Below are positions 14,886 through 18,402 of a stretch of DNA of 64,000 nucleotides, piece after piece. The notes below the pieces were generated by a model. It ran no database searches. It worked only from the letters and a program-made list of their open reading frames with translations, and was not told the DNA's origin. Both the position numbers and the translations under genes were made by a program. The stretch is from sequence record NC_048046.1; one strand, given 5' to 3'. How positions within the stretch are numbered: position 1 is the first letter of the stretch; each line of letters opens with the position of its first letter.

Positions 14886-14900
14886 GCCGGGATAACTGGC

Positions 14901-14975
14901 ATGGTTAACCGAAAGCGTCAAGAATCCTGGCATTTCTCTCCAGGCTTGACCGTTAAGGCCCTTATGGATAAGGAA
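14901..14975. promoter_or_regulatory. divergent promoter region between the replication module and the ncRNA island
   Basis: ATGGTTAAC 14901-14909, palindrome CGTCAAGAATCCTGGCA 14916-14932 (minus TTGACG), plus-strand TTGACC at 14946. Confidence 0.55.
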
Positions 14976-15170
14976 TAATCAACCGAGGCGGGTCCACCAC
15001 ACCAACCGCGTGCCTCACGCTCTGCGCGCGAATTGACCGTAACTCGAAATCGCCGGCGCCTCAGGTGGAGGAGGTCAAGGCAATGGGCGAAGGACGGGCG
15101 CGGCGAGCGTATAATCGAGGCCGGCTAAAGCTCCTGGGAGTGTAGGTGTCCTGCCACCGTTCCCACGATG

Positions 15171-15249
15171 CACGGGATCGACAGGTCCGTGTGACGCGAA
15201 CGCCGGCCGAGAACAGACGACAAGGCGTGACGCCCGGAGAGAGTGCCGG
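15171..15249 (+). ncRNA. repeated structured RNA module, copy 1
   Basis: CACGG/CCGTG helix, TGACGCGAACGCCGGCCGA, GGCGTGACG, CCGG-AGAGAGTG-CCGG hairpin. Confidence 0.7.
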
Positions 15250-15374
15250 ACTTCTTGACACGACGACCTAGATCGGAGACACCTTGGGTCGACTAGGGGA
15301 CCTGGGGTGGTGCGAATTGGCTTCCACCTACAGTCATCTGGCAGCCTTTGGGACCCCAGGCTGTCGGGCTCAAC

Positions 15375-15473
15375 GGTGATGAGATGCCAACGGCTGGCTG
15401 GAATGCCGAATTCACCTGACGCGAACGCCGGCCGAGACGATACGACCAGGGCGTGACGGGGGCCAGAGGCCTC
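15375..15473 (+). ncRNA. repeated structured RNA module, copy 2
   Basis: GGTGA/TCACC helix, same 19-nt core at 15417, GGGGCC-AGA-GGCCTC hairpin. Confidence 0.7.
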
Positions 15474-15642
15474 GATCCTTTACTTGACCGGTGCCAAGAG
15501 TTCTGGCATCCAGACTGTGATTTCTCAGGGGCCTCGGTTTCTGAGGGACCTAATCAGGCGATCGTGACCGTCTCAATGGTGCTGTCCAGCGAGAAGATCG
15601 TGAGCCCGCGTATGAGATGTCATTTACGCGCGGGACACCCAT

Positions 15643-15728
15643 GGTGGTAGGGAGCCGCTGAGTGGCCCACCTGACGCGAACGCCGGCCGAAAAGTACGAT
15701 CAGGCGTGACGATGGGGAGAGAACCCAT
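15643..15728 (+). ncRNA. repeated structured RNA module, copy 3
   Basis: GGTGG/CCACC helix, core at 15672, ATGGG-GAGAGAA-CCCAT hairpin. Confidence 0.7.
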
Positions 15729-15770
15729 TCAACTTCCGCAGGCGGTCGAGGCCGTCGATTAGGAATTCAA

Positions 15771-16364
15771 ATGCCTACTACCATCGAAACGGACAACGTC
15801 CGTCGCGTGGACTACACCGTTCGCGCCCACATCACCTACTCCGTCCATGAACATGTCAGCCACGGGTCTTCCGGCTCGGAGCGTGAAATCGTACGCAGTG
15901 TGCCTCTGGGCGAGGCGCGCAGCATGGCGGAAATGCACGCAAAGGCGTCGACCGGACAGGTTAAGTTGCGTACGGTCGATGTCCAGGAGGACTACTATGG
16001 GGCGGACAGCCTGCCTTTGGGGCTCCAGCATGTGTTTCGGGAACTGCTTGAGCATCCCAACGGTACGAAGTGGGTGCTCTCGCGAGTAAATCCCCACACT
16101 GGACCGATGCTACGCATTCAACGTTACACGCCTCAGGAAATCCCTCTGACGCCGGCGCGTAATCCTTGGGATGAACTCACGGTCGCCCAAATGCGTCAGA
16201 CGCTCGTCGCCCTTCGTGCGCTGCCGTGGGAGGCTGCGAAGGCTCTGCGCCTTCAAGCCTATCAGGATCGCGACGTTCATTTTATCGAAGTGCTCAACCG
16301 CGCTGAGGTCGCCATGGACGTTATCGACCCGGCGCAGGTCAACGAATTGCGCCTGACGGACTAG
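15771..16364 (+). CDS. hypothetical protein (197 aa) embedded in the ncRNA island
   Basis: AGGA RBS at 15761, ATG, clean stop; the only CDS inside the RNA island. Confidence 0.75.
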   Translation: MPTTIETDNVRRVDYTVRAHITYSVHEHVSHGSSGSEREIVRSVPLGEARSMAEMHAKASTGQVKLRTVDVQEDYYGADSLPLGLQHVFRELLEHPNGTKWVLSRVNPHTGPMLRIQRYTPQEIPLTPARNPWDELTVAQMRQTLVALRALPWEAAKALRLQAYQDRDVHFIEVLNRAEVAMDVIDPAQVNELRLTD

Positions 16365-16511
16365 TTTCTTGACAAGAGGCGGTGCTGCGCATATCCAGAT
16401 CGGAGATGTCGCAGCACCGCTGCCGGCGACGTCCAGGGTGCTGTCCCTGGAATAACCGATCGGCTTGGAAGACAACTCCTTGGGGTAAGGACTGCTGAAC
16501 CCCTGACGGCT

Positions 16512-16595
16512 GACAGGCTCCGGGAGTCAATGTCCTGTCTGACGCGAACGCCGGCCGAGATTAGGCGACGAGGCGTGACGGGGGCCAGAGGCCCT
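16512..16595 (+). ncRNA. repeated structured RNA module, copy 4
   Basis: GACAGG/CCTGTC helix, core at 16540, GGGGCC-AGA-GGCCCT hairpin; ends 6 nt before the tRNA. Confidence 0.7.
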
Positions 16596-16601
16596 ACACC
16601 T

Positions 16602-16686
16602 GCTACGGTGGACTGAATGGTAAGGCGCGGGACTGCAAATCCTGTCGGCGAAAGCCTCGTGGGTTCGATTCCCACCCGTAGCTCCA
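16602..16686 (+). tRNA. tRNA with GCA (Cys) anticodon and long variable arm
   Basis: acceptor GCTACGG/CCGTAGC, U73, encoded CCA, anticodon loop CTGCAAA, V-arm GGC-GAAA-GCC, T-arm GTGGG-TTCGATT-CCCAC. Confidence 0.88.
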
Positions 16687-16715
16687 AAATTCCTGACATT
16701 TTTATGCCAGCCTGC

Positions 16716-16744
16716 TTGACAACTGAAAAGTCGTCCGGTACACA
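16716..16744 (+). promoter_or_regulatory. sigma70-like promoter of the tmRNA
   Basis: TTGACA-17 nt-TACACA; the -35 is the right half of the palindrome TGCCAGCCTGCTTGACA (16705-16721). Confidence 0.65.
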
Positions 16745-16750
16745 CTCCTC

Positions 16751-17175
16751 ATCGTCGTAATTCGGATGACGTGATTGGTGTCAAGACGCGGGTGCGATTC
16801 CCGCCGGCTCCACCAAAACCCCACCGGCCGACGCTTCGGCGTCACGACCTGCCCCAGCGACAGGTCGGTATCTGAACGGTACGGTGGGGTTCTGATGGGG
16901 CCGATCAGTTTCGATTGGCATTGAGAGTGAAGGACGCGACGTAGGGTGATCTCCTAGCCAAGGCTTCGGCTGAGGTAATTGGGTCAAACGCTGACAAATG
17001 TCAACGACAACGACGCTCCCGTGATGGAGCAACGTCTGGCGGCCTAAGGGCCTCCAGCGGCGCCCGGTGGGGGCGTGGCAACAGAACCCCACCACCCTGC
17101 TTCCGCAGCCGGAGGCGTTGGTACAGGGCGTTTCTGTCGGCAACCGTTTCGCCGCCTTTACGTCTCCGGCTACGA
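16751..17175 (+). ncRNA. ssrA: circularly permuted two-piece tmRNA (ends approximate)
   Basis: acceptor piece ending GCGGGTGCGATTCCCGCCGGCTCCACCA (16815) precedes the coding piece starting GGGGCCG (16897) with G3.U70; tag frame 17000-17047 VNDNDAPVMEQRLAA*. Confidence 0.9.
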
Positions 17176-17186
17176 AAACAGGTTTG

Positions 17187-17264
17187 GGGAGTAGTCCTCC
17201 GAGGGATCGGAGAATAACGCTCTCCGGGGAGGCGCCTGGGACCATCCAGCCCAGACCGTCTCCC
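17187..17264 (+). ncRNA. candidate multibranched structured RNA
   Basis: GGGAG/CTCCC closing stem, CCTCC/GGAGG, CGGAGA/TCTCCG and CTGGG/CCCAG helices. Confidence 0.45.
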
Positions 17265-17273
17265 GAATTTTAT

Positions 17274-17336
17274 GCCGGGGATAGGGTGGTCGCTCGCCCT
17301 AAACAGTTCGGGTAAGCTCCGGCTGCCCCGGCTCCA
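17274..17336 (+). ncRNA. 63-nt tRNA-like mini RNA
   Basis: 7-bp GCCGGGG/CCCCGGC stem plus T plus CCA; only two internal hairpins, no TTCRA loop. Confidence 0.5.
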
Positions 17337-17343
17337 AGTTTGA

Positions 17344-17420
17344 TGCGGGGTGGAGCAGTCCGGTAGCTCGTTTGGCTCATAACCAAAAGGTCGAGGGTTC
17401 AAATCCCTCCCCCGCATCCA
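17344..17420 (+). tRNA. tRNA-Met (CAT), initiator-like body
   Basis: TGCGGGG/CCCCGCA acceptor, GGAGCAGTCCGGTAGCTC D-arm, loop CTCATAA, GAGGG-TTCAAAT-CCCTC, CCA. Confidence 0.92.
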
Positions 17421-17544
17421 CAAGCTGAAGCTCCGATGGCGGCCCTAGGCCGCAGCTTTACCCGGTCCCACGTCGGACAAGGCCGGGGTCTAGGTGGTGA
17501 GATATGATCGACGCCGGCGGAGCGCCAAGCCACCTTCCGCCACC

Positions 17545-17580
17545 AACGCCGTGTGCGTGACAAGCCTGGAGAGAACGGGC
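17545..17580 (+). ncRNA. repeated RNA module, short copy 5
   Basis: AACGC-CGTGT-GCGTGAC-AA-GCCTG-GAGAGAA-CGGGC. Confidence 0.55.
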
Positions 17581-17610
17581 ACTCCAATCCGGGGTATGAG
17601 GCCGGATGTA

Positions 17611-17656
17611 GCGAACGCCAGCGAGATCGGCGTGACTGGTGGGGGAGAGGACCCAC
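17611..17656 (+). ncRNA. repeated RNA module, copy 6
   Basis: GCGAACGCC-AGCGAGATC-GGCGTGAC-TG-GTGGG-GGAGAGGA-CCCAC. Confidence 0.6.
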
Positions 17657-17739
17657 GCTGATTTTGCTGAACGCACGCTACGGCGTGCGTTTTGCTAATT
17701 CAGCTTCGTCGTGGGGGGTTCGACTCCCCAAGTTCGCGC

Positions 17740-17813
17740 CTCCTAGGGCGTTAGGGCTGCGAGGGACAGCGGCGGATAAACGGGAGTTGCCGGTTCGAGT
17801 CCGGCCTGGGAGG
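17740..17813 (+). ncRNA. tRNA-like element with canonical acceptor and T arms but a non-canonical middle
   Basis: CTCCTAG/CTGGGAG stem, GCCGG-TTCGAGT-CCGGC T-arm; no U33 anticodon loop, no CCA. Confidence 0.5.
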
Positions 17814-17868
17814 GCACTAGGAACCCTGCTGGTGGAGGTAATTGGAGAACCTCGTCCGACCTATTTTT

Positions 17869-17955
17869 GGTGTGGTGGCTCGACAGGTAAGGCGCCGGCC
17901 TCATAAGCCGGAGGGCGAAAGTCCTATGTAGGTTCAAATCCTACCCACACCTCCA
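17869..17955 (+). tRNA. tRNA with CAT anticodon and long variable arm
   Basis: GGTGTGG/CCACACC, U73, CCA; CCGGC-CTCATAA-GCCGG; V-arm AGGGC-GAAA-GTCCT; GTAGG-TTCAAAT-CCTAC. Confidence 0.88.
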
Positions 17956-17978
17956 ACTATGCGACGCCCCAGCGTCCG

Positions 17979-18145
17979 GACGACTCCCTGGTCGGTAACC
18001 ACTCCGCCACAGGGACTCCCAGCCGGGGATAGCATGCCGAGGACGGAAGGCGCATGCCGTGACTGCCGGGAGAGTACGGTATCGAGTGAAAGCCGTGAGG
18101 CAGACCCTAGTTGCTCGACGGGGGTCGTGAGGTGGAAGCCCTCAC
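17979..18145 (+). ncRNA. candidate structured RNA containing module copy 7 (18043-18081)
   Basis: 9-bp long-range helix ACGACTCCC/GGGGGTCGT; ACGG...CCGTGAC-TGCCG-GGAGAGTA-CGGTA; GCC-GTGA-GGC; GTGAGG-TGGAAGC-CCTCAC. Confidence 0.55.
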
Positions 18146-18153
18146 ACCTTCCC

Positions 18154-18402
18154 TTAATTGAACAAAAGCTGCTTGCTGTCGGCACGGAATGCGACGCCGA
18201 GTTCGATCAGGATGCGCTTGATCGTGGCGTAGAAGTTCAGCACAGCACGGTGATCCGAGATCGAACCACCCGTTACCAATGTGCGGGTCTTCCCGGCATG
18301 CTGGACGCGAATCTTGCAGTGCTTGTTGCGCTCGACCTCGAACTCCACGTCGTGGTGCTTGAGGATGCGTTTCGCCATCTCTACGGTGTCGCGGCCAGCC
18401 AT
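18154..18402 (-). CDS. HicA-like small protein (82 aa)
   Basis: helix-three strands-helix pattern with RNKHCKIR, size typical of HicA/dsRBD-fold proteins; no HicB nearby. Confidence 0.45.
   Translation of the reverse strand: MAGRDTVEMAKRILKHHDVEFEVERNKHCKIRVQHAGKTRTLVTGGSISDHRAVLNFYATIKRILIELGVAFRADSKQLLFN

Follow-up and report, generated by a model that had tools for sequence, protein, structure and literature searches.

Few classes of structured RNA are common to very different groups of phages, and most of the known ones are ribozymes, riboswitches or guides. Pistol ribozymes are about 50 nucleotides (nt) long and common in phage-like DNA; the loop of their 5' hairpin forms a pseudoknot of 5-6 base pairs (bp) with the strand before the 3' hairpin, and they need a helix P2 enclosing the pseudoknot strand, P3 and a G-U cleavage site. 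Theta ribozymes, which are minimal ribozymes of the hepatitis delta virus (HDV)-like kind, adjoin phage tRNA genes (PMC10879173). They are small pseudoknotted phage RNAs, often flush with tRNA genes and also found away from them; their fold is a nested double pseudoknot (P1, P1.1, P2, P3), a C is catalytic, cleavage takes place at the first nucleotide of the ribozyme itself, and reports of them come mainly from gut phages of Bacteroidota and Bacillota. The put RNA of phage HK022 is a folded, cis-acting phage RNA that needs no dedicated protein and consists of two long, ~70-nt stem-loops arranged in a V with a triplex, whereas the boxB hairpin of lambda nut, a 5-bp stem with a purine-rich, G-A-rich, GNRA-like pentaloop found early in operons, is paired with boxA and requires the N protein. 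The PeSLs of T4-type phages are terminator-like hairpins followed by sigma-70-type promoters that lie in plastic regions and bound gene cassettes. Here we describe a predicted strand-specific RNA module of ~45-60 nt, an H-type pseudoknot plus a hairpin, that is repeated seven times in an island of tRNA and transfer-messenger RNA (tmRNA) genes within the window, a stretch of 64,000 nt of DNA from sequence record NC_048046.1, to which all positions refer unless a record or locus is named.

Seven copies of the module in the CcrPW island

The window matches Caulobacter phage CcrPW (NC_048046.1) with 100% identity. This phage is a jumbo siphophage of 308 kb in the Dolichocephalovirinae, and the first position of the window lies at about 124,001 in its record. 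The non-coding island at 15171-18081 lies between two leftward blocks, one DNA methyltransferase/A1-like and the other helicase/RNA-ligase, and carries on its plus strand the genes for tRNA-Cys, a permuted tmRNA, an initiator tRNA-Met and an elongator tRNA-Met (Table 1). Across the subfamily, Caulobacter and Brevundimonas phages have an equivalent island that carries the same RNA genes. An earlier note on the window, made from its letters, had reported a module repeated at least seven times in this island, with four near-identical cores at 15192, 15417, 15672 and 16540 and three shorter variants. At exactly these four positions we find the 19-mer TGACGCGAACGCCGGCCGA, each time on the plus strand, against a shuffle expectation of 0.14 (none of 100 shuffles reached four occurrences), and the looser pattern GAACGCC-N6-30-GGCGTGAC occurs five times against 0.01 expected. 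A covariance model, R1, was built from 70 copies, mostly from unrelated metagenomic phages, and the window was searched with filters off. R1 recovered all seven reported sites and no others, all on the plus strand; the next-best match has an E value of 0.85. Five copies are solid, and two (B and D) are degenerate, hairpin-only variants. All three of the shorter variants were detected, but only the one at 17610-17656 scores strongly (40.6 bits), the other two being weak and degenerate.

The orthologues of copy B in phiCbK, Karma, BL10, Rogue and BL57 are full modules (37-42 bits) located 4-6 nt past the CCA end of tRNA-fMet; in CcrPW, copy B has decayed. No extra copy was found in CcrPW record positions 1-124,500, despite 25 further tRNA genes there. 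Therefore, within the 188 kb of CcrPW examined, the module is confined to the tRNA/tmRNA island.

Table 1. Module copies and neighbouring features of the CcrPW island in window coordinates; S1, S2 and P3 are the helices described in the text
Feature	Position	Strand	R1 match	S1	S2	GAC	P3 and its loop	Remarks
Copy A1	15196..15249	+	15195-15252, 39.5 bits	15196-15197/15206-15207 (2 bp); loop GAACGCCG 15198-15205	ACGCC 15200-15204/GGCGU 15224-15228	15229-15231	CCGG 15234-15237/CCGG 15246-15249; loop AGAGAGUG	
Copy A2	15421..15473	+	15420-15477, 36.0 bits	15421-15422/15431-15432	15425-15429/15450-15454	15455-15457	GGGGCC 15459-15464/GGCCUC 15468-15473, one G.U pair; loop AGA	
Copy A3	15676..15729	+	15675-15730, 44.5 bits	15676-15677/15686-15687	15680-15684/15703-15707	15708-15710	GAUGGG 15711-15716/CCCAUU 15724-15729; loop GAGAGAA	
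ORF gp415	15771..16364	+						197 aa; within the 868-bp segment between the A3 and A4 cores
Copy A4	16544..16595	+	16543-16599, 41.9 bits	16544-16545/16554-16555	16548-16552/16572-16576	16577-16579	GGGGCC 16581-16586/GGCCCU 16590-16595; loop AGA	tRNA-Cys begins after a 6-nt gap
tRNA-Cys	16602..16686	+						ARAGORN and Rfam
Permuted two-piece tmRNA gene	16712..17138	+						Rfam tmRNA_permuted 90.4 bits, alpha_tmRNA 66.8 bits; ARAGORN tag peptide
Initiator-type tRNA-Met	17344..17420	+						Copies B and C downstream in the same unit
Copy B (degenerate)	17546..17580	+	17541-17583, weak, 14.9 bits, E 0.08	No room for S1	Plain hairpin ACGC 17546-17549/GCGU 17555-17558	17559-17561	GCCUG 17564-17568/CGGGC 17576-17580; loop GAGAGAA	
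Hairpin 5' of copy C	17586-17604	+						UCCGG-GGUAUGAGG-CCGGA
Copy C	17611..17656	+	17610-17656, 40.6 bits	GC 17611-17612/GC 17621-17622	17615-17619/17629-17633	17634-17636	GUGGG 17639-17643/CCCAC 17652-17656; loop GGAGAGGA	
Terminator-like hairpin	17671..17693	+						ACGCACGC-UACG-GCGUGCGU then UUU; read from sequence
Elongator tRNA-Met	17869..17955	+						Copy D 88 nt downstream
Copy D (degenerate)	18043..18081	+	18043-18083, weak, 16 bits, E 0.046		ACGG 18043-18046/CCGU 18057-18060, compensatory variant	18061-18063	UGCCG 18064-18068/CGGUA 18077-18081, one G.U pair; loop GGAGAGUA	

Fold and covariation

Because thermodynamic folding of single copies is uninformative at 60-70% GC (z -1.0 to +0.9), the fold was derived by comparison, chiefly in an alignment of 95 distinct IMG/VR copies gathered with the exact pattern GAACGCC...GGCGTGAC...AGAG. 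In the predicted fold, a variable stem of 2-7 bp, S1, closes the loop GAACGCC(G), and the ACGCC of this loop pairs with a downstream GGCGU to form S2, giving an H-type pseudoknot with GA as loop 1, usually G as loop 2 and, as loop 3, a linker that varies from 6 to >40 nt. S2 is followed by GAC-(A), by a hairpin, P3, of 4-7 bp with the loop GAGAGA (AGA or GAGAG in CcrPW variants), and by a G-poor tail. P3 is paired in 92% of cases and shows compensatory changes at all five of its pairs, one position sampling G-C, C-G, U-A, A-U and G.U; partner columns that are slid pair only 25-47% of the time, and the observed covariation was matched by none of 500 shuffles. S2, in copies gathered by this pattern, is nearly invariant (99.8% paired). 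Its double-sided changes are ACGUC/GACGU (three IMG/VR copies, and CcrBL10), AAAGCC/GGCUU (one sequence) and AAGCC/GGCUU; further variants are CACC/GGUG, which is common, and ACGG/CCGU in window copy D, as the earlier note had correctly read.

S1 was spotted as complementarity between the 3-5 nt 5' of GAACGCC and the nucleotides 3' of GAACGCC(G), with AUC/GAU, GUC/GAC, CCG/CGG, CAU/AUG, GGU/ACC, AGG/CCU, CGA/UCG and GGG/CCC among the pairs seen. The alignment was not fitted to this helix, because the search model contained no S1. Even so, S1 is paired in 78.5% of cases and each of its three pairs shows 30-34 double changes, and in an independent test the mean stem was 2.64 against 1.46 +/- 0.12 when partners were swapped between sequences. 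The covariation of S1 and P3 is free of bias from the collection pattern. An alignment restricted to the Dolichocephalovirinae agrees, with S1 as GGC/GCC, AGC/GCU, GGA/UCC, GGU/GCC, CCC/GGG or CCU/AGG and with the S2 variants AAGCC/GGCUU and ACGUC/GACGU; in the CcrPW copies S1 is reduced to 2 bp, GC/GC. The five solid window copies possess S1, S2, GAC-(A) and a P3 with an AGAG-type loop, and score 36-44.5 bits with a model made from other phages, whereas copies B and D retain an S2-like pairing, GAC and P3 and have no S1 (E 0.05-0.08).

No further helix joins the module to its flanks or to its linker (upstream-linker, upstream-3' flank and linker-3' flank pairings were tested), so the module is self-contained. 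An inner helix within the S2 loop (GCC/GGC, CUGA/UCAG or UCCUA/UGGGA), seen by eye in some Dolichocephalovirinae, is not general and was replaced by S1. A reading of GA...GA near S2 as a K-turn or tandem G.A motif was abandoned since this GA is loop 1 of the pseudoknot. The plus strand was assigned because the G.U pairs are readable there only and because all copies share the strand of the tRNAs, as the earlier note had proposed.

These results bear out the view in that note that a selected, strand-specific RNA fold, rather than a plain DNA repeat, underlies the copies: the covariance-model search of phage and metagenome data that it called for found homologues, and three helices covary in ~95 distinct sequences. 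The 3' hairpins likewise have differing stems and AGAG-containing loops, as described. The arrangement it gave (helix, core, helix, GAC, hairpin) has to be revised, since it overlooked the covarying S1 that closes GAACGCC(G), so that its central helix is the second stem of a pseudoknot. As for the helix 5' of the core, one can indeed be found in each copy, but it is the weakest element and only weakly above chance, stems of >=5 bp within 60 nt occurring at 26% of random anchors in GC-rich DNA and the ensemble P of ~0.003 being taken over partly orthologous copies. Upstream of the module, nothing is conserved outside the Dolichocephalovirinae.

Distribution and genomic placement

The module had been presented as a feature of the island. 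Sequence searches show instead that it is a widespread family across unrelated tailed phages. It was found by blastn in 38 Dolichocephalovirinae records, and a three-part pattern matches at least 120 IMG/VR contigs; of the 100 IMG/VR loci searched with R1, 87 hold confirmed copies at E<=0.01, 100 copies in all. Among named phages, copies are confirmed in Planktothrix phage Pag-Yong1 (two tandem copies, 52 and 32 bits), Cronobacter phage CS01 (27 bits), Rhodobacter phage RcCWillis (25.5 bits), the N4-like Stenotrophomonas phage Pokken (24.7 bits), Pseudomonas phage Medea1 (23.6 bits) and coliphage mEp390 (22.8 bits). The module therefore spans jumbo siphophages, T1-like, N4-like and temperate phages and cyanophages, always in gaps between RNA or protein genes. 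In the named phages, copies recovered by similarity keep UGAC-A-P3 with the loop GAGAGA or GAAAGA and vary in the upstream part, and the true family is probably broader than sampled. The mEp390 region is rare in E. coli (7 of 5426 genomes) and unannotated. In bacterial genome contigs, the pattern GCGAACGCCGGC...GGCGTGAC gave mostly chance matches in GC-rich bacteria, the hairpin being present in 2 of the 120 matches listed.

Placement relative to neighbouring genes is tight. Where a tRNA follows, it begins 3-12 nt past P3 (10 cases), and in CcrPW the hairpin of the fourth copy ends at 16595, 6 nt before the tRNA that starts at 16602, just as the earlier note had counted. Where a tRNA precedes, the distance from its 3' end (CCA or discriminator) to GAACGCC is 4-6 nt in six of seven junctions and 21 nt in the seventh, and with a gap of 4-6 nt S1 would therefore begin ~1-3 nt past the tRNA end. 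Elsewhere the module fills short spacers in co-directional gene arrays. For 35% of module clusters, the stop codon of an open reading frame (ORF) on the same strand lies no more than 40 nt before the cluster, against 11% at random positions, and start codons concentrate 10-30 nt past P3, sometimes at 7-9 nt without a Shine-Dalgarno sequence. The flanking genes are co-oriented with the module in 79% of cases upstream and 66% downstream. Among 19 loci examined, TerS, TerL or portal genes lie 0.5-2.6 kb downstream in seven and head genes in two more. DNA methyltransferase or primase/helicase genes are downstream in six loci, and in temperate phages the module is near a repressor or integrase gene. 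Tandem arrays of 2-4 copies within 200 nt occur in many IMG/VR contigs, and Brevundimonas phages have three copies.

Comparison with known RNA families

The earlier note could assign the module to no known family, and this holds: Rfam 15 gives no match on any window copy (14900-18300 and 15150-15760, E<=10), on the module in seven IMG/VR loci or on a consensus-like copy submitted as a 101-nt query. Literature searches by keyword and by sequence string found no description of the motif, and in the phiCbK genome paper an Rfam search recovered only tRNAs (PMC3556154). Because no described relative was found, we file the module, on these comparisons, as a new RNA class. A resemblance to SAM/SAH riboswitches is limited to the string GGCGUGAC, which is shared by chance.

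The hammerhead ribozyme has a conserved core, CUGANGA ... GAAA, with three helices at one junction and an NUH cleavage site, and the earlier note had seen a loose echo of it. The sequence CUGAnGnGA ... GAC does loosely resemble that core, but the module has GAC instead of GAA, with C at the A14 position, and two extra core nucleotides; its three consecutive closed hairpins cannot build the junction, no hammerhead model matches at E<=10, and the CUGA stretch is conserved in the Dolichocephalovirinae only. Pistol is similar in length, in occurrence and in topology, its hairpin loop also forming a pseudoknot with the strand directly before a second hairpin. However, the P2 that pistol needs is unsupported, complementarity between linker and 3' flank being 3.46 against a control of 3.57 +/- 0.09 (z = -1.2), and 3.64 against 3.61. 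The conserved nucleotides also differ, and the P3 loop is conserved in the module and not in pistol. Theta ribozymes share with the module a small pseudoknotted fold and a position beside tRNAs, and both placements suggest a role in handling tRNA trailers, but the module is found in phages of Proteobacteria and Cyanobacteria and also lies upstream of tRNAs. Neither P1- nor P2-type helices are supported (upstream-linker pairing z = 1.5, upstream-3' flank pairing z = -0.5), and no HDV-type model of Rfam matches. No Rfam ribozyme model matches at E<=10, even with 100-nt queries; membership of a known class of self-cleaving ribozyme, be it hammerhead-like, pistol or HDV-like/theta, is refuted by the tests run, and we attach next to no probability to it.

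A relation to put was likewise rejected, since the architecture differs and the HK022 genome is without the module (best R1 match 15 bits, E 0.17, in IS903; no match to the regular expression). The module hairpin recalls boxB in its stem and purine-rich loop, but it is tied to a pseudoknot and a GAC junction and is also found in virulent, jumbo and N4-like phages and between tRNAs. PeSLs resemble the module as repeated stem-loops that bound cassettes, and the gp415 indel between A3 and A4 (see below) fits this likeness; they are, however, conserved within one phage group, whereas the module is pseudoknotted, has a conserved loop and crosses unrelated phage families. RsmX/CsrB sponges of CsrA have several GGA-loop hairpins in one non-coding region, as does the region of the module. 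The only rsmX score in the island is 27.2 bits at 17582-17693, against a gathering score of 56, and arises because the region of copy C has GGA loops; the class A copies with an AGA loop have no GGA and the pseudoknot has no counterpart in the sponges, so that this candidate too was rejected.

Possible functions of the module

An explanation has to account for a compact, self-contained fold with a near-fixed loop and junction, an orientation that follows the genes, flush placement, frequent tandem copies and an occurrence in very different phages; no partner gene or protein is common to all loci examined. The reading that we favour, though we would not give it an even chance, is that of a cis-acting RNA module that defines or processes RNA ends and is possibly self-cleaving. 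We infer this mechanism from placement alone, an end-marking role being proposed because the module sits flush against neighbouring RNA units. The module would be transcribed on the plus strand along with the tRNA-Cys, tmRNA and tRNA-Met genes, and would act in cis on its own transcript by marking a cut site in the precursor or a point at which degradation stops. It might do so by cleaving itself, possibly as a new class of small ribozyme, or by offering a conserved host ribonuclease a fixed structure; we divide the reading roughly evenly between these two routes, with protection of ends as a variant. Copies A1-A4 would then be the 3' parts of small RNA units, probably separately promoted, and copies B-D the trailers of the tRNA-fMet and tRNA-Met units. 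A more ambitious joint claim would be that the module is either a new small self-cleaving ribozyme class or else a new protein-independent RNA that modifies RNA polymerase, and that in tailed phages of Proteobacteria and Cyanobacteria it cuts or insulates units (tRNAs, tmRNA, small RNAs and the start of the packaging operon) in polycistronic transcripts; this we consider speculative and rather unlikely.

Several points weigh against an end-defining or processing role. The module is not needed for tRNA maturation generally, as the 25 other tRNAs of CcrPW are without one and an IMG/VR array of more than 30 tRNAs carries a single copy, and copies A1-A3 adjoin no tRNA. A sponge would account for the tandem arrays of 2-4 copies no less well. 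The CS01 module, and possibly that of mEp390, lies right after a promoter and before a terminator, which fits an element directed at RNA polymerase. Finally, with collection by pattern, the apparent invariance of GAACGCC, GGCGUGAC and AGAG is partly built in.

The placement in CS01 leads to an alternative in which the module, like put, modifies transcription as nascent RNA, binding the elongating polymerase and suppressing pausing and termination such that untranslated RNA islands and operons downstream are read through. Long untranslated tRNA/tmRNA units are natural targets of Rho-dependent termination. The module often heads co-directional gene blocks, including the terminase or late block and the head genes in the nine loci mentioned above; in CS01 it lies ~20 nt after a TTGACT-N17-TAAGCT box, in mEp390 it occupies a put- or nut-like position, with the repressor gene upstream and a terminator hairpin ~120 nt further on, and hosts as distant as Proteobacteria and Cyanobacteria suggest a universally conserved partner. 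Beyond the lack of relation to put, however, a persistent antiterminator would have no need of multiple copies per unit, of 3'-terminal copies such as C and D, or of copies between two tRNAs, and over 115 copies the distance to sigma-70-like promoters or intrinsic terminators is not consistent; we regard this alternative as improbable, if worth keeping in view. Somewhat lower still we place a decoy, in which arrays would use the conserved GAGAGA loop and the GAC junction to titrate a host protein, either an RNA-binding one or a defence or toxin protein that cuts RNA, or else to bind a protein of the phage. Common tandem arrays (seven copies in CcrPW, besides those noted above) would suit such a role, as would the loop and its closing pair being the most conserved part even where S2 differs (CS01, Medea1, Pokken and mEp390), the weak rsmX-like score, and the gene for a Ro60/Rsr-type RNA-binding protein just upstream of the array in four Brevundimonas phages. 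But among the loci examined that gene is found in those four phages only, many genomes have a single copy, CsrA is to our knowledge absent from Caulobacter and cyanobacteria, and a decoy leaves the tight, oriented placement against tRNAs and gene starts unexplained.

An element acting as DNA (an operator, a promoter or UP element, a site of packaging or recombination, or a hairpin recognised in single-stranded DNA) might be suspected from the TTGAC box that often directly follows P3 in the Dolichocephalovirinae, from the likeness of GTGACA to a -35 hexamer, from the 868-bp indel between CcrPW and CcrColossus that is bounded by module cores, and from the frequent position upstream of terminase genes, where pac or cos sites lie. 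Yet three helices covary, one of them completing a pseudoknot, the distance from ACGCC to GGCGT varies from 9 to >40 nt, G.U pairs are confined to one strand, and the module takes the orientation of the genes beside it. A duplex DNA site would be expected to show none of these features, and we regard an element of this kind as very improbable. Our order is thus processing, the put-like modifier, the decoy, a DNA site and, last, a known ribozyme, with the remainder left to something not considered here. If the module does cut or shield RNA, it would explain how tRNA and tmRNA precursors and operons are shaped without dedicated enzymes and would provide a new tool-sized RNA; an action on RNA polymerase or a host protein would make it a new take-over device. 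R1 gives annotators a handle on a feature that is now unannotated or lies under doubtful ORFs, and the Caulobacter/phiCbK laboratory system permits direct tests.

Transcription units and other features of the island

We infer transcription of the CcrPW island from its strand, its promoter-like boxes and the neighbouring RNA genes. By eye, TTGACA or TTGACC boxes are found at 15253, 15484, 16369 and 16717, each with a 17-nt spacer to an xAxxCA hexamer (GACACC, CATCCA, TATCCA and TACACA), and several related phages have a TTGAC-type box directly after the module hairpin. These repeated boxes are likely phage promoters of the Caulobacter sigma-73 type; a promoter scan of the island with an E. coli-type consensus found none. 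The arrangement suggests three or four short units, each made up of a promoter, 100-140 nt of variable RNA and the module, the last of which runs into tRNA-Cys. A separate unit of tmRNA, tRNA-fMet and copies B and C likely ends at the hairpin at 17671-17693, which the consensus scan did not list. CcrColossus is without gp415, and its third copy equals a fusion in which CcrPW A3 supplies the 5' half and A4 the 3' half. The 868-bp difference between the two phages is thus bounded by the A3 and A4 cores, indicating that the locus was reshaped by recombination between copies. The gp415 product (197 aa) has no Pfam or PHROG match.

The tmRNA is of the alphaproteobacterial two-piece type with the tag peptide VNDNDAPVMEQRLAA, and is annotated in Brevundimonas phage Bajun and unannotated in the CcrPW RefSeq record. 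Between the terminator-like hairpin and the elongator tRNA-Met (17700-17868) are two T-arm-like hairpins, GGTTCGACTCC (17717-17727) and GGTTCGAGTCC (17792-17802), and at phiCbK locus L127 (6400-6500) a D-arm-like piece comes after a T-arm-like one, and the two could make up a tRNA-like RNA in permuted or fragmentary form. The sequences ATGAGAT or ATGAGGC occur in hairpin loops upstream of A2, A3 and C (15379, 15612 and 17596), with weak enrichment in the island, and the hairpin CCGG-GGUAUGAGG-CCGG 5' of copy C is conserved across the subfamily. On the opposite strand, genes for hypothetical proteins are annotated over the class A module and the RNA upstream of it in phiCbK (L127, 3587-4159) and Karma (L002, 2578-3159), and these may be spurious ORFs in GC-rich non-coding DNA.

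The Ro60/Rsr-type gene of the Brevundimonas phages (TROVE plus vWA domains) lies directly upstream of the module array (Marchewka L125, 2083-3468; also L131, L124 and L130). There might be Y-RNA-like genes near it; a link between Rsr or Y RNA and the module was rejected, being restricted to the four phages. CcrPW itself has a gene annotated as an RNA-binding protein, gp440, outside the window at record positions 114590-115999, beside 1.2 kb of non-coding DNA in which no module was found. In Pseudomonas phage Medea1 (L360, 2790-2850), a sequence like the 3' half of a tRNA, with T-arm, acceptor end and CCA, lies ~270 nt past the module, after a terminator, and could be the core of attP.

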